Below are positions 1 to 61,261 of a stretch of 64,000 nt of DNA, in pieces; the stretch's first letter is position 1; each line of letters starts with the position of its first letter. Location of the stretch: contig OZ176052.1 of NCBI GenBank assembly GCA_964247055.1, forward strand, positions 6,138,001 to 6,202,000, given 5' to 3'. The notes under the pieces were generated by a model. The model ran no database searches. It saw nothing but the letters and a program-made list of their open reading frames with translations, and was not told where the DNA came from. Both the position numbers and the translations under genes were made by a program. The DNA comes from Paragordius varius (taxonomy: Eukaryota > Animalia > Nematomorpha).

Positions 1-3000
1 TTTTTGCAACGACTATTTTTTTGTTGAATAATATGGCATGCATAGATTTAAATACGCTCTGTATATTTTCTAAGACAATTCGGGGAAGCAATTAGAATTT
101 AATATTTTGGTATTATTATAAATTTTTTAAAGATTTCAATTATTATAAAGTTTTTTTGTTTAATCCACAAGAGTACTCTTAAATTATTTATAAACTTGCA
201 TGACTGTAGGAAGAGGTCAAAATTATTTCATCGAAAATATCAGAATAAATATCATGACGAAATCCTTATATTTCTAATTATAGCTACAAACAATTTTTAA
301 ACAAATCATCGCATCATATTGTGATATGGTTTCGAAATTTCATAATTATATATTTTATAATGTTAATTATCAATTTATCATTCTTGCATACTTCATCCAT
401 ACTTAAACAAAATTACATGGAATGGCCTTTGTTAACAATCTTTTCATGATAAAATTTTTTAAATTTATTGATTCATTACATGGATTACATCATAAAAAGT
501 AATTAAATAATTTTTTTTATTGACAATGCAGATAAAATGTCGTGATCATACCTAAAAATATCATTTTACAATACCTCTAATAATTATAATACGGGTATTT
601 TGAAAACAATATAGTTTTCATAGGATAATATTTTTGTCTTCATACGTTACGCTTAATTTAGAGAAAAATAAATGACAATATCATCATTGATTTATGTTTA
701 ATGTAGAAAAATATTCATTATATATTTCTTCTATTCATTTATATATGTATGATACCCGTAACTCATCACATCTAATCGCTAAAAGCTTTTTCCCTTTAAA
801 ACCAAAATTATACGCCTGCCAATGTTTAAAATATAATTAATCCAAATCTATACACCTTAAAAAAATAAAATAGCGAATCAAAATCCGAAATCAATGATCA
901 TTTTTTTATTCCTCTATTATTGGATCTTGAATCGACATTGTATCATGATTGGACGATGTCAAATCATTCAAAATAATAGTAAGTAGATACGACATTAATT
1001 TCATATTTTAGATAATTTTAAAAGAAATCCTAAAAAACATTTATTGCTTTTATATAGGTTTAATATTATCAATCATAATATTTATTAATAAACAGTATGA
1101 CCATCAAATTATGCTACAAACATAACCAACAAATTTAATATTCATAAAGGATTTTTAAATCGCACATGTCATTAAAACGGTTTAAATATATGTTTATAGA
1201 AAATATACAGTTTAAAGTCTCTTTTGTCCTTTGAGAACTTTAACACTCGCCTGCTCAGTGCTGACAGTGATGATGGAAAAATTGAGTGGTTTCAGGGTTC
1301 AAACTCTGGCACGCAGTGTAAGAGTCCTCCCTACCTACCACAACATCACGCATAATTATATGCTTGTAAAATTTCCTTCAATTTGTGATCCAATTTAGGA
1401 CAGATTAAAATTAAAGAGCCGAAGGTACTCTCAGTTCAAACCGATCGATTTTTACAACAACTGGTCGCAATACCGTTTTAAATGCGAAGAACCAGAAATA
1501 GGATTGTTATTTTTCAGCATTTGACCGTTTCTCAATATTCTAAAGTTCTGGTATTTTAGGTAAGGTTATCATGAACCAATGATTTTTTAACTCTATAAAT
1601 TGATATTACTATTGACTTCATTTAAATTAAAGTTGTAAAATGTTTTAAGGGGTTTTTCGATGTTTCAATGTATGCTTAGCATACATATTTCACACGAGTT
1701 TGCTTGAGGTTTATAATACAAACATGGCGAATAATTGGTATTGTATGCAAATTAAATTATTTTCTCACCTATTGTGGTTGTTCTAATAAATATGTGGAAA
1801 AATATTCTACACTTTCCCTTAACTAAGAGCTGGAAGATTAGGAATGTTGTGTCCCTAAGCAGTTAATTATCACTTCACTTTAAGCGATCACTATGCATTT
1901 ATATATCGAACTAAATAATACACTTTTTTAGTTTGGTTTTAAATTAAATTGCGTTTTTTAACGAAATGGATGTTTTTGAAATGTTTTAGCTTTTACTTTT
2001 AAATAAATATTTGCAACACAAAAACTATATTAAATGTGACATGCTGAAAAAAATATGGTTTTAATATTTTTTGGTGTTTTTCAACACTTCAGCTTTTCAC
2101 TTTTTTGTTCTAGTTTACATATTGTTGACGTTGCTGTTGTAGTTAACGAGGTCAATTGGTGGCTATTTTGTAAGTGTATTACGCCAGATTGTACGGTTAG
2201 GTGTGATGGGTATCAACTGTTGCATTGTTAGTTTGGTTATATTAGTTAAATTTCAATCCAACGCATTGTATAGTTTTATATCGCAGAGCTCCATTTTGTA
2301 AATAAAATACAGTTTGAAAGTTGTATTAGTTAAAATTTAAATACAAACATTGTCTCATGTATTAGATATAAAAGGTTATATTTTTTACAAACTGGGACAG
2401 CTCCAAATGAAACGAACAGCTAATATTAAAATATATCAAGTTTTTTCCGGTAAATCCTGAAACTTTTTTAAGTTATTTATTTACATTTTCCAACCACAAT
2501 ACATTTATTTGCCTCTTGCATTAACGTTTTATAAAAATTTAGTAAAAAAATTGGTGGCATATTTGAGATGAGAATTTTTTCACATTTTACATTTTTGTAA
2601 AAGCTTAAGAAAGCACATTTTATTACATATATTACGGCAACAATATTAAAGAAAATCAACGAAAATTCAAACATGAAATATTAGGGCCGTTTCCATCATG
2701 AACACGATAAACCCAATCAAAACTTATAAGCCGCCTCAAAGATTACATGTTGTCATCCTATCTTAACTTGAATAAAATGTCTTAAATCTTGAACATAACA
2801 TCAAAAATGTATCTAGATTTAGTATTCAGCCAATTGATATTCTACGATGGTACACCATCAAGAATTAAAAGCATCATTGGTGCCATATTCTTTAAATGCA
2901 CTAGTATTATCTCCAAGCTACACATTTAATTTCTACTAAATATATCTTTGCTAATTTGGTCCCATTTAAAATCAAAACACTGACAGTGAATAGTTTGCAT

Positions 3001-3689: not shown

Positions 3690-3774
3690 TTAACACTCGC
3701 CTGCTCCGGGCTGTCAGGGATGACGGAAAAATTCCGTATTCAGCAAAATAATTTGGCAAGCGACGTGTTGTTAA
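3690..3774. repeat. TTAA-flanked mini-element; the same left end occurs at 1240-1287
   Basis: ttaacactcgcctgctc...gatga(c/t)ggaaaaatt is shared by 1240 and 3690. Imperfect inverted end ggcaagcgacgtgttgttaa. Confidence 0.45.
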
Positions 3775-4059: not shown

Positions 4060-7000
4060 TTGGATATGAAGAATCTTGTCAAAAAAATGAATGCAAGAAT
4101 GGAGGGAGCTGCTATCTTACCGCAGGTTTTAGATAAAGAAATTTTTTTATTTGATTAATATTGTTATGATATAATTTAAAATTAATTTTTATCTATTTCT
4201 CTTTGCGGCCTTTTACATTCATTAGCTAGTATAAAATTTTTTTATGTGATTAATTTAAATGCCTATCAACGATTTAATTAAGATTCCCTAATACCTAACG
4301 AGTGTCCTGAAGGATTTATTGATGGTGGAAACCACTGCATCAAGATAGGCAATTTAAGGAAAGGGGATACAAAATTATTGATGTTTAAAAATGGTAAATA
4401 TAATTGGTTTGATGCCCGACACTTGTGTAAAACACACAATGCTTCATTGTTTGGTCCAAGAACTGTTGAGGACATTGTTAACTTAGGAAAAGTTATATCT
4501 GAACAAACTCAAGAAGGTATTAATAAAATTGATTTCATCTAATGATAATTTGTCTTTTTTGTCTCAAAACTGTGCAATAGTAATAAATTCACAATTGTTA
4601 AACAAAAGCATTTGTTCAAAATTTAGTTACAAATATAAAAATATGCCAGAACAATTATCCGTCCCAAAACGTTTGATTATATTTTTAAACCCAAATACAT
4701 CTCCTTTTGAATGGTTACATTACATTAAGGAATGATTTTTGACCCTGTAATTTTTTTAATTAATTAAAGCATATAACATTATGTACGTTTATTATTTAAT
4801 TAAGTGATTGATTGAACCATAATACCTAAATAAAAAAATCGCTCTCAAAAAACCAAATTTCTAAAAATATTAGATATTATATCGTTAAGTACCTATCCGT
4901 AACAAATTGGTACATTGAGTCTATAGCAAGGGCCGTAAATGATATTTCATTTTTAGATAACGAAATATCCATATGGACGTCGGGTGTTTACATAAAATCT
5001 GATTGGTTTTGGACGCACACATTCAATCGAAAAATTATTCCTCAAGGAATATTTCCTTTTTTTGAGGTAATAGAGTATCAATGTTAACTTAAATATTTGA
5101 GCTAACTCTTATGTCATGTTAAATTATTTTTACACCTTAAAACTAAGATGAATTTGTTTATATCTAACATCATGTCTTTGCCGTGTTTTAGGTATTGCAT
5201 GTTAACTTATAACCCATTTATTTTCGAACATTTTTACTATTTATTCTTAACATTCATGCTAGCCGAAAGCGTAATTTTTGCAAATACAACTATAAACAGC
5301 TTATCTAAATAAAAGATCCGTCATATATTAAACCTAATCATACATAATTTGATATTTTGGTCTTTTAGGGTAAAATATAAGCGAAATATATTTAGCCTTT
5401 ATTATTTTCGCAAATATTGACCTTTAAGACATTTCATTATCCTGTAGAACAGTTAGGAAATCAATAATGTTTATAAGGTTTGTCAGAATATATAAAGTTT
5501 TAAAAGATATCTGAAACCGTAAGAAACTTTCAATATTTCATTTAGGAAGGCGCAACACTAGAAATTCGGGTTGTGTTTAGCCGCATCCCATATAAAGCCC
5601 CAATTAAAAAATACAAATTACCGAAAAATTTGTCTTTAAAACAATTACCGAAAAACGACAAGAATTGTAACCAATAATGTGCCCATTAGTAAACTTTGAG
5701 GCTATTGTATATAGCCACAGGTTTATCCGCATTTCATGCAATAATATACGTATCTAAAATCATACCATTTTTTTAAAAACTAATATTTTGGAAGCTTGTA
5801 GTGAATAATCATCGTTAGCGATTCCATTCGTTAAGATAGTTTTAGTCGGGATGTTTTAGAAAGGTATAACATTTCGCCCATCCAAAGGATACGTCTGCGG
5901 TATATAATAGTTAAATTTTGGCGGTCAATGTAGTTTTTATAATACATTAACGTGTTTATAAAAGAAAGTAAAGTTTGAACAAAGGCGAACACACCCGTGT
6001 GTATCTTTTCAAATGCCGAAGACAACATTGGATCCAATGAAAAATTTCTCATCACAAATGCATTTAATTAACACGAATTGTCTCTCGCTAAATTATGTCG
6101 TCTGTCAAACACCAAAATACTTTTCTCCAGGTAAATTAATATTTTATAATTCCTTAAATTCATAATTAAATAGGGGGAACATCGCAATGTGAATGCCCAC
6201 CTAGGTTTTCCGGTAGGAAGTGCGAACATACAACAAATGGCAAAGATAATGGTTACTTACTTATTACATAATTTTTCATGCGACATTTAACAGTATTAAA
6301 TTTGTTAAAAGCAAAAATGTTATTTAAATTAGACTTAAATTTCTGAATTCCGTCAAACATTAAGATAATATATATATATATATATATATATATTTAATTG
6401 ATTTATCTAAACTTTGGCCTAATTTATCCGATTTCACCGTTTTATAATTTTGTTTTTAAACGATACATTATTGAGATTAATATTTAAATTATTTTATCCA
6501 TTTAGTTATCAAAAAGAAATTCTCCATAAATAAGGACAACAAAATTAACTGTCTTAGTACCAAACTTGGGGGAGCGAAATCAAATCCTGTTCATATTTTT
6601 ATAGAAAGTGTTATAATGGAACGTCAAAACAATAAACAGTTACCACAGTATTGTCAATTGCCTCAAATAGCATCACTTATAAATTTCAGGTCTTCTCAGA
6701 ATTTTAAGGATTTAAAATTTCATTTTTTAATAAAAAATATAATAACCTAATGTTTAAGTGTTAAATATTAAACTATTAACTATAAAATAATTTGAATAAA
6801 TTGCATTATGGGTAATTATTTAGTAATCATTAAAACATGAATTGTATATATTTTAGATGCCACGGTACAGATAATTGTGATTTTAACATACTTAAAAATC
6901 TGACGTATAAACACACATGTCAACTCGAAGATTTTGAAACTGTTTTGAAAGATAATTTTATCATGAATGCTAATTACCAAATTAAAAACAAATCCCGCAG

Positions 7001-10000
7001 AGCTAAACCCACCAACGGTACAAAGCAACCGCTGGAAAATGTGTTCAAAATAAAATATCCCAACATAGAAATCAGATATTCATGTTCTAATAGTCGATCA
7101 TCATGTCCAAACAATACGTTTCAATATCGCGAACACTGTTACTTACTTCAACCTGAGTTGGATTCTCCGTTGCCATTCATGAATTGGTTTGATGCACAGA
7201 GGGAATGTGCCAAATCCTATGGTGGTTTTCTCATAAGTATGGATCAAATGGAAGCAATATTTCTTGAACAACTTTTGAAATCGCTAAGTCAAGCTCGTAA
7301 ATTTCGTATGTCTACGACATCCGTACGTTTTTGGATTGGCCTAAAGCGCAATAATCCCCTGACTCCCTACAAATGGATTGATGGCAATCCATCAGATTAC
7401 AGGTCATTTACACTATTAATTATTTGTAGATTGCTATTATAATTTTATTTAGTATAACTTTTTTTGCACACGCATATAAGGTCCCTAATAAATAATTTAT
7501 ACAAGTAGGTAATAACTAAAAGGATTTTATAATATTCGTTTCGAAAAGTAACTGCCATTAATTACCTTAAATGTCTCACGTATTTGTATAACAATATTAG
7601 GAATTGGGAAAGAGATTTTGAGCAACAAAGCAAAGATCCAAAAAGTAATTGTGCATATTTAGCTTTTCACCCTGAAGCTTTTAGCAATAGTGTTCATTGG
7701 TCAGTCACGGACTGTTTCAAACCGTTTCGTTGGATTTGTCGTTTACCACCACAAGGTTAATTTATTCCAAAAGTCGTTCTGAAAAATTTTAGGTTGTAGT
7801 AAACGAATATTTGCATAATTTATTCCAATTATAAAGTTGTTTTCTGGTAAAAAAGACACTTTAAGCATTATCAATATATTTGCATTTTTGGTACTCGAAA
7901 TATATAAATTTTACTCTAGGAGACGGTTAACAAATAAAAACCATTGAAAATAATAAATGGTAACTCAATTATATTTTTGCGATTAATAATGGCTAAAAAT
8001 ATACTGGTACTGTATATTCCTGCTAAAATCTTTTATAACGTTTTTTTTACTCCAACTTGGATAACTAAACATCAAAAATATGAACCTTTCTAAATATAAA
8101 AAAAACTTAAAAATCTATTTGGCAATGGTAAAAATGGCGTTAAGGTGCAACGCAGAGGATAAAATATATATTTATAATAACTTCACGAATATACAAGCGC
8201 TTTTATTCGATTGATTTCAGTAAACTTTAAGCGTTGCGGCCTATGCTTTTATCGTTTACATACCGTTTCAACAGCACCTATGTTAATTCTCAAAGCAGTG
8301 TTAAAATTTTTATATTAATTTATGTTATAAAATTAACTAAATATCGGATCCCGCCGGACTATTTTATGGAAATAAGCTCAGTTTTAAAGTGTCCTACTTA
8401 TAAAAAAATTTTCCGAAACCCTTGAGGCTAAATAAAATCTCAAAAATTAAATTCTCATACATAAAATTATTCTCTAGATATTGTATTTGGTTTTTACCTA
8501 TTCATAACAGCAAATTAATTTTGCCAAATACTTATAAATTGGATACACAAAAATGTTACTATTTTAAAACCGCTTTGCCGGTACGCTGTCCGAAACTAAA
8601 GCTTTGGCTAATGTTTACCAAACTCTTAATTTTGCCGTTTTTATTAGATATTTAAAATGATCATTATAAACTATAAAATATACGATAATAATATCATTAC
8701 ATTTTTAGAAAATAGCCAAAATTCGGCTCCTCAACCTTACAATAACATGTATAATAATCCATCAAAAGTTAGTAAAAAAACCATTCGTTCCCTTAATTTT
8801 GATGGCCAGCTTATATGCAAGGACCAACAGAGAAAAGAAACGACATTGGTTGGAGAATATTTATTTGAGCCATGCCCAAATCGATCCCAGGGTAATGCAT
8901 TAATGTAAATCAATCGTATTGAGAAAAAAATTTAAAGGGCCGCAAAAAAATATTATGTTGTCTCAAGTGCCGTGACCATATGATACCGATAAAATTTTAT
9001 AGCACATTTGCAGATATATATATTAAAAATAAGTATTCAAAAGTTAAAAATTAATTGGGCCATAAAAAGCACCCGTTGGTTGCAGGGAAATATTTTGATT
9101 AAAACAAATTATTAATCCTCATAAAATAAACGATGCCAGAGATATATTCTTTATTTCTTTAATGAAAATTGAGTAAATGATTTTTATAGTAAAAAACCAT
9201 AATTAATCGATTTCAAACTTCTGATTTTTATAGTAAAAAACCATAATTAATCGATTTCAAACTTCTTTATCACTATTAATAGGATTAGTCTATCTGCCAT
9301 GTAAATATGATATCGGTATGAAAAAAGCTGTTTATGGGGATAAGGTTATGAGATGCGGCAGTTCCAGATTCGATGATCTCGCAACATTGGTATGTTACTT
9401 GTGTGTTAATGTTTAAATTACCTTAATTTTGTTAAAAAAGACCATCCTTCAAATAACCATACAAATAAACATACAGTTAAAATTTTCTCCTTTTTATTTA
9501 AGGTAAGGACTTAAATCTGGGTATCCGACATGCGGTTCTCAGAAATTTTTTTCTCGCGAAAAATTTGGAATAAAAGTATGCCACCTTTTATAATGAAAGA
9601 AAATATCTTGGTAAAATTATAAAATAGATAAATTTCACTTTATAATGTTTGTTAATTAAAATTTATTCAGAATTGTATTTTCGTTTTTTACACCATTAAG
9701 TTTCTGGTAAAGGGTTATTTCAAGGTGGTTGACTATTTAATACCACATATTACCCTTAAACCATAATAACTAAACTCAAATTTTTTCATTAAAGATAAAT
9801 GTTTGAAGGATAAAATCTGAATATATCTTCCTAAATTTGCCAACGGAGGCAAAATTAACTAAATAGTAGATATATCGTAATCCTATCTTTTTTACTATTC
9901 GATTTGTTGTATTTTTTTAATGCGGCCTGCAAACCGGTTTCTGTTAAACACCCCTTACTTAAATTAACTTTATGTCGCATGAAAGCTTTTACACTCCTTT

Positions 10001-13000
10001 GCCCAAGGCTAACAGAGTTAATAGAGCAAATGAGCAATCAGTATCGAATATACCACACACATATACCGCTTTAATCACTCCCCCGTTTCGCCTTAAAAGT
10101 CCCCGTACTGGGAATCAAACTCGGACTGACTATGTAAAAACCATAAATAAAATAAAAATTTATATATTTTACAAATGTTTCTACAATGAACGGATATATT
10201 AACATGATCGCTATTATATTATGCAAATTGTAGTAAATAATTTTGTGGTGTTTATTTGTTATTTGAGATGAATGAATAACATGACGAATTGAATATTCTC
10301 AATATTTTTTAAATAGGAGACAACGTTTCAAAAATTTCAATTATTGAACGTGTTAAAGATATATTTCTAAGCACACCAAATCACTATATCATAAGAAAAA
10401 ACCTGTAGAAACACTTTTTCTAAGGTTTAAAGAACGAGGGCACATATGTAAATTTGGAAAGAGAGGTTGAATCTGAAAAATGAGTGCACATTACAGTGTG
10501 ACTAGTCTACATTACTTGTTTTTCACTGAATTTTGCCAGATAACCTACAAAGTATAGAGAATTATTATTGGGGAATAGTAAGAAAAAGCTAAAAATAATA
10601 TAAGCCACCAATATTTTCCTTTGTTGTAATGCCATCTGACAATAATTAATGAAAAATTAGCAATGTATAATCACTTATATCGTGGATTAAAAACTAGTAT
10701 AAGTGAATAATTTTGACATATCGATTGTCATTAATATCGATCTGACAATAATATAATTTTTATTTGATCCTTTATTAGCTAACAAAAAATGTTGCTGCTA
10801 ATGAAATTAGCCAAAAACTGTTGAATTCAACGCGCGATTCTAAAACATTTCAAGCAAGTGATCTTCAAATTTCGAGCGCTCTCCTAAATGATTTAGCCGA
10901 TTTGCAAATTAAACAGTTATCTAATAGATCACTGAGTAAAAAAGAGAAGAAAAAGATTAGCACCCATTTTGTGCAAACAGTTGGAAACACTTCCAGTAAT
11001 CTGTTAGGCGCACAAACAAACGGTATGTGGGGTCAATGTAATGATAAATTTTTAAAATAAAGTATTTTGTTTAATGTTTTAAATTCTTATCCGAAACGTC
11101 CTGTAATGCCTGAACTTGAAAGTATTTAGTTTATTTAAATTTTATTACCAGTTTGACAATTTGCGTTTATACTTTAACGCTATCATTATAGAAGTGTGGA
11201 AAGATATGGATACTAATGAAAAAGTAACCTCTTTAAATCAAATATTGACGGCGATGGAAAAAAATAATATCATATTATCGGAAAATCATGGATCAGATTC
11301 CCAATTCAAGTTTCCCAATCTAGGTTATAAAACCTAAATAATAATTTAAAGCTTAATTAATTTCCCTTTATTACGTTTATTATTATTCAGAAAAATAATT
11401 ACATTAATGATTTATATTATTATAGAAATGAACAATAAAGTTGTTAAACCCAGTTCCCTTTCAACCAAAAACAATTCAGAAATTTTGGCTTTCAATTTAC
11501 AAACGCACAGTTTGATTGAAAATCATGGTATTGATATACATTTATCTAACAAAATATTGCACCAACTTGGTTCTAACAAACTCAGCCCCATGTCACACGA
11601 AAAATCGAAGATAGAGGAATTCGTTAGTGTTGTTTCCTATACCAATTTAAACGAGTTGTTTCCCACAGCTCAAATTCACACAAATGGGTAATTTCTTTCT
11701 CTTAATCTATTTCAATGAGCTCGAATTAGTTAAATTATTTATCAATAGCTTATTTACTTTGCCAAATATTAGGTGTTGGAATAAGTTTATAAATTCCGGT
11801 TGCAGATTAATTATCATCGAAATTCAAAAATGGATTAACGTTAAATATAGAAACCCAAAATTGTGATTTTAACGACTCCATTTATTTCTGGACAAATTAT
11901 GTAAAATAGACATTTTATTTTGTAAGCAAAGATTTTACTGTTAAATTTTTCCCCTTTTTAAACCAACATATATAAACAAATTATTACAAAATGTAATGGG
12001 ATATTTAAATTTTTTTAAAAAATCTGAGTGTGCATTTTAGACGCTTCACTTTATTAACGAAGCTTTTGAAACAAAAGTACATGAATTTGGGTATTTACTA
12101 TTACTTGTATAATTACAAAGTTTAGCTATTTGGATCCATAAAAAAATGTGTATCAAATTTTAGTTAACTGAAAAAAACAATTTTGAGTTTATTTTCCAGT
12201 ACCAAAATCTCATGAGTTTCTCTGTCCAAATATACTAAAAGGAAATGATAAATAACCCTAAAATTGGCACAATATGATATATTTATTATATACAAATATT
12301 TATAATAAATCTAGAACTTCGGAATTATTTGTTGGGTTTCCTATAATTTCCATCACCAAAAGATTGATGACAGATTCTTATACAAAAGATAACTTACCAA
12401 AAGATCAAATTACGCAAAACGTCTCAGTTAATGCCACTGATCTAGAACAGGAAGTTAAATTGATTTATGAAGCAAACATTTGGAAAAACCAAACATACAT
12501 TTGCGCATTTTGGAACATGGATAATAAGTTCATAATTTATTCAATTCTTTCAATAATTATCTACTATAATGAACTTAACCTAAAATAAATCTTGAAAATT
12601 CGATCTAGTTTTGAACCAAGTAACCCGTTAAAAATTGGCTACCTTGAGTTAAAACCACTATTTGAAATTATTAGTTTGTTGTTTACAACTAAACAATATG
12701 TTCTTATGCAACTCAATTCCTTATTTTGCCACCCAAAACATAGATTATATTGGGAAGTAAAGAAAATGCTTGTCTTTAAAAAATATTTATTTAGTTTTTT
12801 ACGTTCTAATATTATCAATATTGACTGTGTATTTTTTTCCAATTTTTTGCTCATTATGAGGCAACATGTCTGCAAAGTAAAATGTGGGAATACTAACTTT
12901 TAAAGGTCACGACTTAAAGTAAGAACTAATTTAAAAATCGGTCAATCATAGGTGATCCTTATTTTAAAAAATTCACTAGGGGTGCGGGAAGGGCAACCCT

Positions 13001-16000
13001 TTAAAATACAATAAAAATTTGTATCCAATCATATTAAAAAAGCTATTGATAAATTTATCGCTCAAATTGTTACTAATAAAATAATGATATAGCATATTAT
13101 TTTTCAAGTATATCTTTGGAATATTAATTCCTTTAGATCAAACGTACATTGGGATACGATTGGATGTAAAACTATCATCCTTAATATTAGCCATATAGAA
13201 TGTATATGTAATCATACCACAAGCTTTGCCATATTGACTGATCATAAGGGCGTTTTGCTAAATTTGGATCCAACAAATACAATCTTACTTGACTTGATCA
13301 CCAATGTGGGCCTGATAGTTTCAAGTGTTTGTCTCATTGCAACCATACTTATTTTCCTTAAAGTCAGGTATAAATAGTTGGTTAGGAAGGGAATAGTAAG
13401 GAGGTTGGAAGGAATATAAAAACAGTAAATAGATCTATTACATGCCATTTCAGTATATTAATTGATTATAAGGGTACTTATATTACATGGTTGCCTTGTG
13501 TGAAATTTTTTCTTTTTTATTGAAGATTGTGGAGGGAAAATACAGTTTTTAATTATATATGTTAATTAAATCGAAAATCTAATGCATGGAAACAGGGATG
13601 TATATAAAATACTAGGCATTTAATTACCGAAATGGCCTAAAATAGCTCTCGTTGCTGTATATGCCCCAGGCGCCATTAATTAATGGGCACTGAAATAAGA
13701 TTTTTCATAAGTTAATACAGCTTTTTGCATGACTTTGGCAAAACAACGAAAGAGCGCTGTCAAGGTAGGCACCGACGGCAAACGCATGTTACGCCACTAG
13801 TTGGCCATATTTTAACTACTTTTTAAGTCTATCATAATGATACTAATAATAAAAAAAAACAAAATTAATTTTTGTATTTTTAATTTTCGTGAAAATAATT
13901 GGCCACAGCACATTGTTTTATCAGAATACTGATGTGCTCAGTACGTATTACTTTCTATGATAGATTGGTAATTAATTTATTTTTTAACCATAGAGCATTA
14001 CATGGTGAAAGAACTACCATACATCTCAATGTATGTTTCAATCTTCTGACAAGCGAAATTTTATTTCTTGCCGGCATAAATTTTGTCCATATCCAGGCTT
14101 TGTGCTCTATCATAGCAATCTTATTACATTACTTTTTCCTTACGACTTTTATGTGGATTCTGATGGAAGGTGTTTACTTTTTCATACTGCTGAAAAATGT
14201 GTTTGACGATGATAAATCGTATAAAGTTTGGTATCACGTCTGTTCATACGGTAAGCATTTTTAATTATAAGATAACGTTGAAAAATAGTTTTTCAGATAG
14301 AAATGAAAAACATTTTTTATTTAAAAATGATTTTTATTTTATTACATTGTATTAAGCTGAAGGGGTGGTGATTGAATGGTTAAAACATCGAATATGAGTG
14401 CGTCATAGTTCGAATCCCAAAATTATACAATTTTATATCCTAACTGTCAGCCTTGCACAAGTTGGTGTAAAAACTCTAATGGGTCATTCGATTGAAGTGT
14501 TTACCCTTTTAACACTTGGATACAACACATTCATTTTAGTCCTTCGATTCAAATTGGGGTAGTTAAATACCCCAGGCCAGTTAATAATTAAATTCTTCAA
14601 AAAATATGGAATGAATCGAAACCATGGCAAAATCATGCACTTATATAACATCAATAAACCCAAATATATAAAAAAATTTATTCAAAAATACTTGATATTA
14701 CTTATTTTAAGCTAAAACCGAAAGGTAAAAATTTAGTCAATGTGACATGCGGGCAATGGTAAAATTCAAAAACAATACAAAATAAACAGCTTTTATATTT
14801 CTATCAATGTTAGATGTAATTTAAATCAAAAATTAGCTTTGATTTTACCCTTAAAATTAAATAAAGACGATATTTTGCAAAATTTTTGTAAAATAAAAAT
14901 GGCGGCCAAGTAGTTTGACATGGAGCTTTTTTTTCAAAACAAAATTTTATTTAGATATTTTGGCATATTTACATAATTTTTATTAGGATAGAAGCATAAA
15001 TTTAAATTGGGACCGTTTCCTTCAATAGTTTTTTAAAAATCCTAACTCAAATTTAGTCTGGGGTATTTAGATACCCCAATTTGAATCGAAGTGTTAAATA
15101 AGAAAAATACCATAAAATAATTTATTATATTATTGTAACCTAGTCATGTGATTGACCATATTGGTTCATAATATTATAGAACTTTTTCGAATCCCACATT
15201 TTTTTGACACAATATCAACAAAAGAACAATTTTTAAATCAAAAATCTGTGTAATTAAAATCTTTTGTAATATCTATTGTTTTTATAATTTGCAAAGGAAT
15301 TTAGGACATTTCAAAGATGGGGTACATTATCATAAAATGCGCCTCGACAAATATTAAAGTAAAAATATTTGATTTAAAAATCTAACATATATAAAAAAAT
15401 TATCGCACTACCTCAGCTATTCTGTATTTTTCAAGACCTAGGCCCATTTTAAAGCTCATATCAAACTTATAACATTTTCATAGTTATTGTAAGTATCAGA
15501 AATGCGTTTTTTAGCTTGTGGTATTAATATTAAACCATTATTTTGGGTAAACAATGAAAGATAAGATCGTATGACACATAAGTCTCAAAATTAAAAGCAT
15601 TATTAATATATTAAAAACATTTTGTTATATCAGAGTAATATATTTCATTAGGATATATTTTGTGTGTAATTCAAAAAGCTGGAATGTAAAGTTTTCTGAT
15701 CATTCTAATAAATGAATAAATTAAAATTTGGCCTGTAAACATGAAATTTGGTCTAACTTAACATTTAAAATTAGTCTGTCATTTATTTATTGTTAATATT
15801 ACAAAGTAATTATTATGAGAAATTGTTTTTAAAGATATATCTGGAAAATCGATTACAATTTACGCCTAAAAAACAATTTATTTGTTCTAATAATCTAAAT
15901 TTGTTTTTTATTAATATTTACGGATGAAGAAAAAGATACCTATGAAATTAATTATCTTGGACACCAAAATTGAAATCGAATTTATTAGACTATTATAAAT

Positions 16001-17787
16001 TTTGTTGATATATAGTCTGTTCTAAAATAAATTGGTGGCAGAATTTACCTTCCCCGTTAAAAGCAGTTGTTGTGTTTATAATATAAAGTTAAAAATACAT
16101 CTTTTCTACAAATATATTTTCAAATAAATCAATCAATGAATTTTAGCTGTTCCGGCAATCATTGTTGGAGTTAGTTATGGTATATGGCCCAACGGGTATG
16201 GTACAGAACACAGTTGTTGGCTAAGCACCGAAAGGGGATTTATCTGGTCTTTCATGGGTCCCCTTTTATTTATAATCTTTATAAATGTTTGCATACTAGT
16301 CTATTCCTTACTCAGAGTCATGCACATTAAAGCACCTTCGAACAATAAAACAGGACGGTTTTGGTATATATTTATATTTAATAACTTGAGAAAAAAGGAA
16401 TAAATGTTTTTATTTGATAAATATATCCATGAAAATAATTTTTAAGCCAGATTTTATTTGTATGCTCTTCTTAGGAAATGGCTAAAGGGTTCGACAATTT
16501 TGCTATCAGTAATGGGTATAACATGGCTTTTTGGATTCATGTACATGAATAAACAAACTTTAGTATTTGCCTACATATTTTGTACCCTGAATGCTTTTCA
16601 AGTTAGCTTTTCTTTTTTAAAAAAACATGCGTTGAATTACAGTATGAATAAGTATATATTGCTAGAAAGTTATCAAATATTGCATAATAATAGCATATGC
16701 AGCAAAGTGAATTATTATTGGCTAAAATAATAAAAAATGTAATAACAACTATTAGCCAATAATTTATCCCTTTGTTGTTTATGCTATTTGGCTATAGTTA
16801 TTAACTTTCTAGCAATGTATACTTACTCATACTGTAGTAAAATATTGTGAGTTTTTTTAAAAAATTTAACCAGCAAATTTTTAGGAAATGTGTTATTAAT
16901 AATAGTATACAATTTAATTTATGGATTTGAAATTTGGCCAATTTGTTTGATTGTTAATAATAAAAAATTTATTTGAACTTAGAAAGGCGATTTTTCGTAA
17001 CTACCACATTATACTTTTATGGGTGAATGTTTTTACAAATGGCCCGACCAGTTATTTTTGATCAGTTAAAAATTTAATCTATTTCCAACATTTCTTCAAT
17101 AACGCATTTTGCGATTTTTGAACTTTGAAAAATATTAATAATATATGCCAAAATTTTAAATAAAATTGTATAATAAAAATATTTTTATCTTTTTTTGGCT
17201 CCATTAAATTTTTATCACATTAGTTAACCCGTATCGCGTCAATTTTAGAATTTATTTTTTGTTTGATAATGTTAGGGTTTATTCATATTCCTGTTCCACG
17301 TATGGATGAATGATAGAACTAAAATAGCTTTACTCAGGCATTTAAAACGCATGGGATTGCTGAATAAGTATATCGGCCCCATTTTAGCCACCACAAGTAC
17401 AACCGGGGCCGGTGGAGGGGAATCTATGGCTAAATCCAATGTAATTTTATTTTTTAATACGGAGCAATAAATATATTTTACGTTTATTTTTTTATTAACA
17501 AATCTCATATGAATCTTGATTGATGATATTGTGTTGAGATGTTAAATGCAGTTTTGTATTGTGGTGATTAAAATTTTTTCAATGAAGTAATTTTAACGAG
17601 CACCTATAATGATTTTTATGATTTTAATCATTTATTTTATTAATGTAACAAATTATAGTCAACGAAAGGTCCATATTTTCTTTCCAATTTCAGTATTAAA
17701 GGTTTTAAACCTTTAACGAATTCCGAAGTTGCCGAAGACGCAGATTTACCTGGAAAATTTAAACCATTATTAAATCGTGAATTTTAA
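4060..17787 (+). CDS. Latrophilin/Cirl-like adhesion GPCR (EGF split by C-type lectin; RBL/SUEL-like; second C-type lectin; HRM; GAIN/GPS; 7TM), 5'-partial, at least 1268 aa
   Basis: Exons: 4060-4125, 4283-4516, 4957-5066, 5965(or 5974)-6130, 6174-6251, 6506-6689, 6857-7402, 7601-7755, 8709-8891, 9283-9389, 10779-11022, 11192-11323, 11426-11687, 12315-12527, 13137-13367, 13994-14250, 16147-16363, 16475-16601, 17276-17440, 17659-17787 (TAA). All junctions are GT-AG and phase-consistent. Motifs: CKNGGSC and CECPPRFSGRKC (EGF); NWFDAQREC, FWIGL, YKWIDG, WIC (CTL); CAFWN...WDTIGC...CICNHTTSFAIL (GPS); ERTTIHLNVC, LHYFFLTTFMWILMEG, YGTEHSCWL...FIWSFMGP, MGITWLFG, NAFQGLFIFLFH (family-B/latrophilin 7TM). 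The start and signal-peptide exon was not found, and the last exon is less certain. Confidence 0.9.
9179..9266 (+). repeat. Direct tandem duplication, about 44-bp unit x2
   Basis: gatttttatagtaaaaaaccataattaatcgatttcaaacttc is repeated back to back. Confidence 0.85.
9870..10140 (-). mobile_element. tRNA-derived SINE relic
   Basis: The minus strand has a B-box-like GTTTGATTCCC, then ctaactctgttagccttgggcaaaggagtgtaaaa, then an A-rich tail. The same internal segment appears at 14440-14480. Confidence 0.5.
14362..14505 (+). mobile_element. tRNA-derived SINE relic (same family as 9870-10140)
   Basis: A-box-like GGTGGTGATTGAATGG, B-box GTTCGAATCCC, then ctaactgtcagccttgcacaagttggtgtaaaaa. Confidence 0.45.
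14509..15097 (+). mobile_element. MITE family A copy 1 (TTAA-flanked, piggyBac-like)
   Basis: ttaa|CACTTGGATAC...GAATCGAAGTG|ttaa, with internal inverted repeat CTTCGATTCAAATTGGGGTA. About 585 bp, in intron 16 of the adhesion GPCR model. Confidence 0.8.
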
Positions 17788-18273: not shown

Positions 18274-21200
18274 CTATGTACTTTCTTCTATCACATTCGA
18301 TAAAATGGTGTGAGGTATCATAGCACCCTTACTTGGAGCATTTGAAATGGAAGGCATCACGATAATATTATAATTATTATTCTTATTATTATTATCTCGA
18401 TGATTAGAGAATTTAAAAAAGTTTTTGACGAAATTAAAATTGCATGTTGTACCACCAATAACATTTTTATCGTTTATCACAGGCTGTTGCTTTACCAGTG
18501 TTAATTCATTCATGTTTGACAGCGAGTGTTGATGATTATTAGGATTATTAAATGGATATTGATAATTATAATTATTGTTGTGATGATAAAGGGACGAAGT
18601 GGTTGTTTTTGTTGTCCCAACACCAAAAAACGATTTGCCATTCTTGCAATGAAAGACTTTGTCACGGAAATCACAAAGAGACATTAGGAAGGAGACTAAT
18701 CTACATAATTGGTACAGGCAATCGAGCAACGTGTATTTCAACGCTCTCCGATACTTGAGAGATATAACATTGTAAATGATGGGATTTATCGTAGCTGACA
18801 CATAAAACAGTATGCCAGAAATGTAAAACAGGACCTTGAATTCTTTAAGCCGCTGTTCATTCCAGTATCTCACGTAACTAAAGTGCAATCTTTGAGCTTG
18901 GTTTGGAGCGTAGCAAATGAAAAAGCAAATTACGACAGCAACTAGATTTGAACATACAAATATTATATATATCACGGATATAATGTTTTAGATTCCTCCG
19001 AATCTAATTTTTCTTTAACCAGTTCCGGTTCCACTTGCTTTTTCAGTTTCCTCTGTTTTTTGGTCAAATGGTTCAAAAATCGGGTGCATTTAAGTAAAAT
19101 TTTATTGTGGGCTATTTTTATTCTGAAAATCGGTTGTTATACTTAAAATAAAAGAAAACTTTCATAAATAAATGAATTTAATATGGTATAAAAATTAAAA
19201 AACTAAAAATTTATATTTCTTTTTGGTAAAATGGTTCCAACCGATTCCGGTTGCCAATCCCTGATAAGTTATACAAAATTGATTAAATTACACTAGACAA
19301 CAAATTTTAACTTTTTTTAACTGCCATTCTTGTAAATTTAAAATTTATTTCATTTAAGTACATAATTAGTATATCTGAAAAGAAAATTGGTCTAGCATAG
19401 AAAAATCTTTTTTTATTAGAGTTTATCGATAATTTTTGGCCCCGATTTAACATTAAGCTAGAAATTTCGAAAATTAAAAGTTTTAGATATGAAGCCAAGT
19501 ATTTTATATCATTCGAAAGAGCGCAAAAAACTGCATCTTTTAAATGGTAGTAAGTCATTTAAATCAATCGGAGGTAAAAGTTATTTGGATTTAAATGGTC
19601 GAAATTTTCAATCCTTAAATAAGTCAAGAATTTTCACAGACACACTAATTTGAAAATCATATAAATTATTTTAATATAATTATTAGGGTTATATTAATAT
19701 TTAATTTAAAAAAAATGTTTAAAAAAGCTTTTGGCTTGCTTTTTTAATAAAAATTATTATTATCATAAATATTTTACCTAGTGGATACTAAAATGCATAG
19801 TTATAACTGTAAAATTATTCCATAATGGCTATAAAAGATCAAAAATACCTTAAACTTTATTTTTATCTTTAAAATTTCGAAATTATCAGCATTATAAAGA
19901 AAATAAATTAATATTGATGAGATGGTAGTTTTTAAAAAACAAAAAACTTAAAAATGGCTGTTTTGAGTGACATAAAAGCAATAAAAAAATGTTTTAATCA
20001 AAAAAACTTTCTTGTGTTATCTTTTTTGGACATTCATCACCATCTAAACAAAGTTTGAGCTATTTTCATCCATTAGTTTTAAAAATATAATAATTAAAAA
20101 AAATGCTCTCGCTTCGCGCGTTTGTCGCTCTTTGTGTCCAATATTAACTGTCGATGTAATACATATTGGTATGCATTTTATAGAGTTTTCATTACTCTTT
20201 CGAATGATATATTACAAATGGGCATTACTTGTATATTTTGAAATAAAAATATTTTTTAGTAAAATTTTGATAAAGAGGGCGCATAATCAAAAAAATCAAA
20301 TTATACAAAATTTTTTCAACGAGTTATAATTTTTATTTCAGATTTTCTGTTAATATGATACTAAATATCAGAAAGTTCAAAAAACTCGAATGGCAGAAAA
20401 ATTTGTTGTCCAGTGTTATTTTGTTTGATTAATTGATTTTATAATTGTTTGCAATGATATCCTTAATACTTCTATTTTGTCAAAAGAACGTTTTAAGGAA
20501 AAGTTTCAAAAGAGTACCGCCAAAATTTATATTTAAGTTAATTTTATTTGAGATATATTATAATTTTAGAGTTAACATTTTCCCCTTTTATGGTCAATGG
20601 CAATAAAATGTATGTTTTGAAGTCTTTTTAGATGCTGCATAACACTAGAAAAAACAAATTTTAATTTTTTAAGTGCCATTCTTGCAAATTTAACATCAAT
20701 AGTATAGTATATCTGAAAAAAATTGGTCTAACTCCCAATAATTTTTTTATTAGGGTTTATCGACAATTTTTGGCCCCGATTTAGCATTAAACAAATTTTC
20801 ATAATTAATAGTTTTAGATATAGAGCCATGTATCTTATATCATTCGAAAGAGCGCGAAAAACTGTATCTTTCGAGTGGTAGTTAGTCATTTAAATCAATC
20901 TGTGAAAGATATTTGGGTATATATGGTCAAATTTTCAACCCTTAAATAAGTCACAAATTTTCACAGACAAACTAATTTAAATATGATATAAATTAATTTA
21001 ATTTAATTATTAGGGTTAAATTAGTAGAAAACTTATAAAAAACTGTAAAAAAGCTTTTCTTTTGATTTTTTAATAAAAATTATTATTATCATAATTATTT
21101 TACCCAGTGGATACTAAAATGAATAGTTATACTGTAAATTTAAATAATCGTCAAAGAGATTAAGTTAATTTTAACTTTTTTAGTCATTGAAATTTTGAAA

Positions 21201-59156: not shown

Positions 59157-59390
59157 AAGACAAATTGATACCATAAATCGATACCTTACACGCTTTTTCC
59201 AGAAAATTAAGGTAATATAACATTTATTATACTAATATTTAGTTTTAATACTTGCCAACATTATAAAAAATTTAAATTAATACTACAAATCGGTAGCTTA
59301 AAAGACAAATTGATACTACAAATCGATACCTTACACGCTTTTTCCAGAAATTAAGGTAATATAACATTTATTATACTAATATTTAGTTTA
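59157..59390 (+). repeat. About 90-bp direct duplication in the hAT 5' subterminal region
   Basis: aaagacaaattgatac...aaatcgataccttacacgctttttccagaaa...ttaaggtaatataacatttattatactaatatttagttt occurs near 59157 and 59302. Confidence 0.8.
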
Positions 59391-59395
59391 TAAAT

Positions 59396-61261
59396 ATGAA
59401 CACAAAAAGAGGCTGTAAATTCAATGATGAATTAATGAAAGATTTTCCTTTCATTAAAAAAACGAAGAATGAATCGTCTGTTAAATGTCTTATATGCGAT
59501 GGGGAATTCACCCTGGCACATGGCGGCAAACATGACATTACAAAGCATATTGATACACACAAACATCAAAAATGTTTAATTATAACGGCATCATCTCACA
59601 AGATGAGCGATTTTTTTCGAAAAACCGCTTTTGGAGAGGAAGAAAGGAATTTAGCACTTGCTGAGGGCCTGTTTTCCTTTCACGCCTTAAATCATTGCCA
59701 TTCATTTCGTTCAATGGATTGTACCTCACAGGTTATTCGCACGTTATTCAATAAAAAATTTTCATGTGCCCGTACAAAGGCTGAAGCCATTGTATGCAAG
59801 GTTTTTTCGCCACATGCTTTTTCTGAAATACAAAAAGATTTGCTAAAAATTATTTTCTTTTCCCTATACTCTGATGCTTCAAATCACCATGAAACAAAAT
59901 TATTTCCTACTTTGATAAGATATTTTGATTCAGAAACCGGAGTAAAAATTAAAATTTTAGATTTAATTTCCCTACCCGGTGAAAATTCTGAAATAATATT
60001 TACTTCAATAATGCATATTCTAGAAAAAAATAATTTAAAAGACAAAATTATCGCATATTGCGCTGACAACACCAATACGAACTTTGGTGGAAAAGCAAGG
60101 AGGGGAACAAAAAATATTTTTCATAAATTAACAGATAATCTTAATCAAAACATTATTGGCGTAGGGTGTGCAGCGCATATAATACACAACGCTATTCAAA
60201 CAGCTGCAGATTTGTTACCCTTAGATGTGGAAAATGTAGTTGTTAAAATATATTCCCATTTTTATATATACACGGTACGTGTTGAAACGCTTAAAGAATT
60301 CTGTGAAAATGCAGAAGTGCAATATCAAAAAATGCTTGGATATAGTAAAACTCGTTGGTTAGCTTTTATGCCAGCTATCGAAAGAATTTTAAAAATGTAT
60401 GATCCTTTAAAATCTTTTTTTTATCACAGGATAAATGTCCTACAACTTTAAAAAAAATTTTTGAAAGTGATTCTTCAAAAATATGGTTAGAATTCTTACA
60501 TAATCAAGCTTCTCTCTTTCAAAATGTTATTAAATTTATTGAAGGTGACAAAATTTCGGCAGTCGAAGTAGCCAATGAAGTTAGTAACCTGAAATTCCAA
60601 TAGAACGGTTAGAAAATAGATTTATTCCATTAACCATCCGCAATACAATAAATAATTAGAAAAACAAGGCTTAATAAATCGCCAAGATATCCTGTACCAT
60701 ATAAAAATGTTTTATACAAACTGTAAAGATTATTTGGAAGACTGGACGACGCAATTCAATGAAATTGATCATTTTCATTGGATAACATTAAAATCAGAAT
60801 TTAATTGGTGCGATGTTCAAAAATCATAAGATTATATCTGCTCCCAAAAATTTTCAAAAATTGATCTTTCAGAAAATGATCTTTTTTCTGAGTATCATTA
60901 GTTAAAAGATATATTAATAATGAAAAACTTAAATTATGGACAAAAATATATAGTAGAAAAGAAATGGTTGGAAATATTTCATCATTTTGAAGCCAACTAT
61001 ATTACATACAATAATATTTTAAAAATTGTGGAATTCGCACTATCTTTACCTGGAACCAACGCTGCTACTGAGCGCGTTTTTTCCACAGTAAATCAGGTGT
61101 GGACATCGGAAAAATCAAATTTAAATGTTGAAACTTTGAAGGCCGTTTTATCTGTCAAATATAATTTGACAAATTCTTGTGAAGACTTCTACAATATTTT
61201 AAAAAATGATGACAATCTGCTAAAACGCATTCATTCAAACCAAAAATATACCAAAGAATAA
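59396..61261 (+). pseudogene. Frameshifted hAT transposase
   Basis: Zinc finger (CLIC...HGGKHDITKHIDTHKH), YSDASNH, CADNTNTNFG, GCAAHIIHN, KTRWL and the C-terminal dimerisation motif LPGTNAATERVFS. The frame breaks near 60420, 60600, 60655 and 60830-60915. Confidence 0.88.

Follow-up and report, generated by a model that had tools for sequence, protein, structure and literature searches.

A C-type lectin-like domain that may be nested in a split EGF domain of an adhesion receptor in Paragordius varius

Can a complete C-type lectin-like domain (CTLD) be carried inside a single epidermal growth factor (EGF) domain? The question is raised by a block of five exons, here called A to E, in a 64-kb stretch of the genome of Paragordius varius (Nematomorpha). 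This stretch, of 64,000 nucleotides (nt), is referred to below as the window (contig OZ176052.1, C3 in our numbering; C3:6,138,001-6,202,000), and positions are counted from its first letter. The first-pass annotation of this DNA had described a CTLD, encoded by three exons, between the two halves of an EGF, in what was taken to be a latrophilin. The window is very AT-rich (27% GC). Genome-wide searches were run on the assembly of 110.6 Mb in 44 contigs, and every exon was scored singly, exon by exon, against profiles and libraries. The EGF profile was derived from 26 intact EGF repeats in other genes of the same genome, the CTLD profile from 45 CTLDs in proteins that were matched by exon B in a full-library search. 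The five exons are the following.

Exon A, positions 4060-4125, forward strand (+): phase 1 in and out; encodes Cys1 to Cys3 of the EGF (C-x4-C-x5-C) with CxNGGxC, in which NGG is typical of EGF.
Exon B, positions 4283-4516, forward strand (+): phase 1 to 1; N-terminal part of the CTLD, with the CPxGF...C hairpin and NWFDA..C in the region of helix alpha1.
Exon C, positions 4957-5066, forward strand (+): phase 1 to 0; middle of the CTLD, with IWTSG...DWFW (equivalent to WIGL...W.W).
Exon D, positions 5965-6130, forward strand (+): phase 0 to 1; C-terminal part of the CTLD, with Cys2, Cys3 and Cys4.
Exon E, positions 6174-6251, forward strand (+): phase 1 in and out; encodes Cys4 to Cys6 of the EGF, CxCPPxFxGxxC (C-x-C-x8-C).

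The coordinates, phases and AG/GT sites of these exons read as first annotated, and so does the combined length of exons B, C and D (510 nt, or 170 codons). For exon D an alternative in-frame acceptor is possible, with a start at 5974.

The two halves of the EGF stand out clearly in the window. Among its 3,609 stop-free six-frame pieces the best EGF matches were exon E (17.0 bits) and exon A (13.7 bits), and the third piece reached only 8.2 bits, so that the window holds exactly two EGF-like pieces. Scored singly, exon A covers positions 1-12 of the profile (14.0 bits) and exon E positions 20-32 (18.2 bits); the two are complementary halves on the same strand and flank the CTLD exons. A second EGF half hidden within the introns can be ruled out, as no further EGF-like piece is found in any frame of the window. 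In Pfam, exon E matches EGF_laminin (E-value 0.002) and EGF_2 (E-value 0.012), and exon A alone gives no match. When exon A is read straight into exon E, the cysteine spacing becomes C-x4-C-x5-C-x9-C-x-C-x8-C, the textbook EGF that had been claimed: it lies inside the range of the 26 intact EGFs and agrees with the general spacing of EGFs of the PF00008 type, C-x(3-8)-C-x(4-7)-C-x(6-12)-C-x-C-x(7-13)-C, with a hairpin of 4 + 1 + 4 = 9 residues if A joins E.

The exons between the halves cover the CTLD profile in order: B at positions 4-50 (28.1 bits), C at 53-72 (1.5 bits) and D at 90-123 (8.2 bits). Among the CTLD matches in the window exon D ranks fourth, after exon B and two exons, F and G, that encode a second CTLD further downstream (CTLD-2, see below). 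The cysteines and motifs of a long-form CTLD are present, namely the four core cysteines and the N-terminal hairpin pair, together with CP.GF...C, NWFDA..C, IWTSG, DWFW, P-C, N-C and VVC. This bears out the earlier description of a complete three-exon CTLD, phase 1 at both ends, at the Cys3-Cys4 hairpin. At the stop frequency of the window (0.073 per codon) the chance of 170 codons staying open is ~2e-6. Exon B found 12 weak matches, mostly multi-CTLD proteins, in a full-library HMMER search of 1.84 billion representative proteins (best E-value 2e-10); it aligns with the beta1/alpha1 region of NKG2D in the PDB (E-value 0.003), and in the ESM Atlas it resembles Lectin_C fragment clusters (score 0.93). 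Sequence searches of the PDB with exons C and D gave no CTLD match. Exon C is assigned to the CTLD on the strength of its place between B and D and of its motifs, open frame and splice sites, and not of a score of its own. Direct reading of exons C and D shows that the calcium- and sugar-binding motifs EPN/QPD and WND are absent, so that the inserted domain qualifies as a CTLD by structure only and is unlikely to bind sugar as a lectin; it would probably act as a protein-binding or otherwise non-canonical ligand head.

The exons of the block also appear to belong together. All boundaries of exons A-E are AG/GT, and the GC content is 34-46% in the exons versus 12-30% in the introns (exon A 39% versus 18-30% in its flanking introns, exons B-D 34-36% versus 12-29%). 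The intron between A and B measures 157 nt, and that between D and E only 43 nt. The open frame of exon B has no upstream ATG and requires a phase-1 donor, the nearest of which is that of exon A, 157 nt upstream; likewise, the phase-1 donor of exon D sits 43 nt before exon E. There are three cysteines in exon A, six in B-D and three in exon E, and the EGF halves reach an even total only if A and E are combined. Since the cysteine counts, the lack of an ATG in exon B and the proximity of D to E all point in the same direction, a transcript that includes A-B-C-D-E is the natural reading of the block.

The reading that we favour, and to which we would give a little better than an even chance, is that the N-terminal module of an adhesion G protein-coupled receptor (GPCR) of the L/E group carries a long-form CTLD of 170 residues, encoded by three exons, on a single EGF, at the tip of its Cys3-Cys4 beta-hairpin. 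The insert comes after four residues past Cys3 and before four residues leading into Cys4, which is the tip of the main EGF hairpin, and linkers of ~6 and ~9 residues would lie between EGF and CTLD. The N- and C-termini of CTLDs lie close together (PMC7618208), as had been assumed when the block was first described, and with adjacent termini an insertion at the hairpin tip is geometrically feasible. For the splicing, disulfide pattern, fold, origin and ligand type of the nested module, the last of which was considered above, we infer the following. In the mature mRNA the exons would be joined A-B-C-D-E. Disulfides 1-3, 2-4 and 5-6 would hold the two EGF halves together around the insert, and three disulfides of its own would close the CTLD, which would hang peripherally on the EGF much as laminin L4 does on an LE module. 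Such a module would most likely have arisen when a symmetrical phase 1-1 set of CTLD exons, possibly donated by the neighbouring CTLD-2, was inserted in a phase-1 intron already present in the EGF hairpin. Somewhat more tentatively, and at rather less than an even chance, we suggest that this is a true domain within a domain, made by exon shuffling into an intra-module intron, and that cassette splicing may toggle the receptor between a bare EGF and a lectin-like head.

Several observations weigh against the nested module. None of exons B, C and D singly matches Pfam Lectin_C (PF00059) at an E-value of 1 or below, and exon C alone is not significant at its 1.5 bits. There are also weak splice sites: purine-rich acceptors precede B and D, and a T stands at +3 in the donors of exons A and E. 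In the split EGF a serine stands two positions before Cys4, where 22 of the 26 intact EGFs of the genome have an aromatic residue. In the CTLD, ~12 additional residues separate the N-terminal Cys hairpin from the start of the NWFDA helix. The CPEGF...C start of exon B is faintly reminiscent of EGF Cys5-Cys6 (Pfam cEGF, E-value 0.16; EGF_Tme5, E-value 0.29; EGF profile positions 22-32, 1.6 bits), so that the cysteines could pair differently. Finally, a paralogue search of the own genome with exons B and F matched those exons only, and the 12 full-library matches of exon B included no orthologue and, when scanned with regular expressions, none with a half-EGF beside the CTLD.

The most probable of the alternatives is that the CTLD exons form an optional cassette, with a 4125-6174 join giving a plain six-cysteine EGF and inclusion giving a lectin-on-EGF form. 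Such a splice switch is compatible with a nested fold; we regard it as possible but unlikely. Both outer boundaries of the cassette are in phase 1, so that skipping is frame-neutral, with a Gly codon at the join; the skipped form would have a spacing of 4-5-9-1-8, within the range of the EGFs of the genome, and the acceptors of B and D are seemingly weaker than those of A and C. Moreover, the ectodomains of adhesion GPCRs are widely splice-varied, ADGRE5 for example occurring with 3 to 5 EGF repeats (PMC13197933). On the other hand, the short introns at either end bind the cassette closely to both half-EGF exons, and the lack of the aromatic residue before Cys4 in the hairpin suggests, if only weakly, that selection acts on a form other than the plain one.

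A different pairing of the cysteines offers a second alternative, in which the exons are spliced from A to E and no EGF is rebuilt. The halves would then be disulfide-stapled linkers, exon A for instance combining with the CPEGF...C loop of exon B into an EGF-like unit of five cysteines. In favour of this are the EGF-like features of the loop given above, and the fact that the alignment to the CTLD profile begins only past that loop, ~12 residues ahead of NWFDA. Nevertheless, exon E is a much better match to the Cys4-6 half than the loop is (18.2 versus 1.6 bits), hairpins of the form CP.N[FWY]...C head other CTLDs of this genome, so that the loop fits a long-form CTLD, and even with a unit of five cysteines Cys2 would have to pair with Cys4 of exon E. 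We consider this alternative improbable. Very improbable, finally, is an artefact of the gene model, that is an ordinary EGF split by a 2-kb intron in which the CTLD exons are unused relics or belong to another transcript: exon C indeed lacks a significant match of its own and the searches for relatives gave none that would show conservation, but the three exons keep 170 codons open against the small chance given above, with phases that match inside and out and AG/GT sites, they retain all six CTLD cysteines and an exon-like GC content, and exon B, without an upstream ATG, cannot start an independent gene.

The Cys3-Cys4 hairpin is often split by an intron in ordinary EGF repeats of other genes of the genome. 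In EGF-repeat genes on contigs C2 and C3 four such introns were verified, in that reading through them meets stop codons.

Locus L035: intron of 70 nt in the EGF Cys3-Cys4 hairpin, phase 1.
Locus L022: intron of 35 nt in the EGF Cys3-Cys4 hairpin, phase 1.
Locus L019: intron of 461 nt in the EGF Cys3-Cys4 hairpin, phase 0.
Locus L018: intron of 214 nt in the EGF Cys3-Cys4 hairpin, phase 2.

A phase-1 intron at this place in an ordinary EGF could readily receive a phase 1-1 exon set, which makes the insertion plausible. The origin by exon shuffling into an intra-EGF intron, which the first-pass annotation had put forward as one of two explanations, gains to this extent from the four introns, two of them in phase 1, and stands as plausible. 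As for the donor, CTLD-1 (exons B-D) and CTLD-2 have NWFDA in common and are weakly similar at both ends (E-values 0.004 and 0.001, each from a single comparison), and their last introns lie ~two codons apart; a local duplication of CTLD-2 is a possible source of CTLD-1. The genome contains ~five CTLD loci, all with two-exon CTLDs and without flanking EGF halves. Searches of proteins by word index, with exon B, exon F and one of the 7TM (seven-transmembrane) exons as queries, gave no match, and neither a transcript fragment nor a contig from a related species came up.

To which type of gene does the block belong? Downstream of exon E the forward strand carries a series of further exons, and a candidate first exon is found upstream of exon A.

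Candidate first exon, positions 2055-2169, forward strand (+): ATG, a hydrophobic stretch resembling a signal peptide, and a phase-1 donor (T|GTAAGT).
Exon X, positions 6506-6689, forward strand (+): linker of 184 nt, phase 1 in and 2 out, with TTTAG|TT and CAG|GT at its boundaries and split codons for V and R.
Exon F, positions 6857-7402, forward strand (+): Cys-rich linker and N-terminal two thirds of CTLD-2 (Lectin_C E-value 7.9e-8; CTLD profile 36.7 bits).
Exon G, positions 7601-7755, forward strand (+): C-terminal third of CTLD-2, phase 2 in and 1 out (Lectin_C E-value 0.0015; CTLD profile positions 80-122, 16.7 bits).
Exon H, positions 8709-8891, forward strand (+): phase 1-1; a two-Cys stretch resembling a hormone-receptor motif, which continues the frame chain towards the GAIN domain.
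Receptor body, positions 10779-17467, forward strand (+): GAIN at 10779-11334, GPS at 13093-13374, and 7TM at 13899-14261, 16140-16400 and 16446-16727.

The candidate first exon gives no Pfam match; it may be the signal-peptide exon of the gene, as its donor has the phase that exon A requires. Exon E cannot be joined directly to exon F, whose strong acceptor at 6857 requires phase 2 and not phase 1. This conflict of phases is removed by exon X (phase 1 in, phase 2 out). Exon X was not listed in the earlier annotation; it encodes two cysteines and matches no family. Exon H likewise has no Pfam match and may encode a hormone-receptor-like domain. From there the frame chain E-X-F-G-H runs on into the exons for GAIN, GPS and 7TM, which are recognised by Pfam (GAIN 5.9e-9, GPS 2.9e-11, 7tm_2 2.5e-20, 2.1e-14 and 2.2e-5). 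The arrangement that defines an adhesion GPCR, GAIN and GPS directly before a secretin-type 7TM, is thus found on successive exons of the forward strand. Compared with solved structures, the 7TM exons are nearest to ADGRL3/L2, followed by ADGRE5. Given the frame chain into these exons, the gene is an adhesion GPCR of the L/E group.

Several donors in the model of this gene have a pyrimidine at +3, which is unusual for animals (4126 GTTTTA, 6252 GTTACT, 6690 GTCTTC and 7403 GTCATT). These donors may reflect relaxed donor rules in the genome, or errors in the gene model.

The original labelling of the gene as a latrophilin does not hold. A genome-wide six-frame search for the RBL/SUEL lectin domain (PF02140) found it at C3:10.48 Mb and C4:2.40 Mb only, and not in the window. 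In a six-frame search the genome yielded just two GPS matches, one in the gene discussed here and the other ~4 kb downstream of the only strong SUEL/RBL matches, at C3:10481922-10486620. The latter gene, the only one to combine RBL and GPS and 4.3 Mb away, is probably the true latrophilin orthologue. The gene in the window, judged by its predicted domains, is a second, lineage-specific receptor of the L/E type with an EGF/CTLD head.

Some other elements of the window can be mentioned here. Just downstream of the adhesion GPCR, on the reverse strand (18277-18987, -), a frame of 237 amino acids encodes the C-terminal part of a rhodopsin-type GPCR (7tm_1 E-value 2.7e-5, below the curated cut-off), with an NPxxY-like motif and a long asparagine-rich tail. 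Upstream of exon A there are two copies of a near-identical stretch of ~50 nt, at 1240-1290 and 3690-3740 (+), which reads CTTTAACACTCGCCTGCTC...GATGA(C/T)GGAAAAATT and is probably a short interspersed repeat. Towards the end of the window (59387-61258, +) an open frame of 354 amino acids with a zinc-finger-like start and no Pfam match is followed by a frame of 119 amino acids with a hAT C-terminal dimerisation domain (1.5e-7); together they probably represent a remnant of a hAT-type transposon or a domesticated copy.

How does the proposed module relate to known proteins? The insertion of a domain in an EGF-like module (in laminin) and adhesion GPCRs that bear EGFs are already known. The closest precedent is laminin L4 in LE, which likewise places a globular domain within an EGF-like module: in laminin alpha2 the L4b domain is inserted in LE14, with the disulfide pattern undisturbed and the insert peripheral (PMC6744579). 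The host is different, since laminin, a matrix protein, has an LE module of eight cysteines that receives an L4 beta-sandwich, whereas in the window gene, an adhesion GPCR, a six-cysteine EGF would receive a CTLD. Moreover, closure of the EGF-like module has been reported for laminin, whereas for the window gene closure around the insert is predicted.

Among the adhesion GPCRs, the EGF-TM7 receptors (ADGRE1-5) and ADGRL4/ELTD1 resemble the window gene in their N-terminal EGF, their GAIN/GPS, the phase-1 exons of their extracellular modules, and a 7TM near that of ADGRL/ADGRE. These receptors, however, contain whole EGFs in tandem and no CTLD, whereas the window gene has a single split EGF and two CTLDs. 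The latrophilins (ADGRL1-3, Cirl, LAT-1) share with it GAIN and GPS, a 7TM nearest to that of ADGRL3/L2 and possibly a hormone-receptor-like exon upstream of GAIN, but carry the RBL/SUEL lectin domain that is lacking here. C-type lectins are not mentioned in the accessible part of a 2026 review of adhesion GPCRs (PMC13197933).

A CTLD and an EGF in one ectodomain are also found in the selectins, the lecticans and the thrombomodulin group. There the two follow one another like beads on a string, whereas in the window gene the CTLD would lie inside the EGF. The CTLDs of lecticans are also encoded by three exons with flanking introns in phase 1. To our knowledge, and short of an exhaustive search, no protein of the selectins, the lecticans or the thrombomodulin group has been described with a CTLD inside an EGF. 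Searching the literature for CTLD insertions in EGFs or for a "split EGF" returned irrelevant papers only, e.g. on split-EGFP. If the nested fold is true it would, as far as we know, be the first case of a globular domain nested in a canonical EGF.

The practical weight of the finding is modest, as it concerns one gene of one genome. In the usual account, exon shuffling adds modules between modules, like beads on a string. If the favoured reading is true, exon shuffling into an intra-EGF intron, with both domains left intact, can build nested folds as well, and the block would be a clean natural example of this; the precedent of laminin L4 in LE would be extended to a canonical EGF. Should the cassette be optional, it would provide a compact switch of the ligand head of a receptor. 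The nested module would also represent a new ectodomain layout among adhesion GPCRs, found in the Nematomorpha, a phylum whose receptors are almost unstudied.

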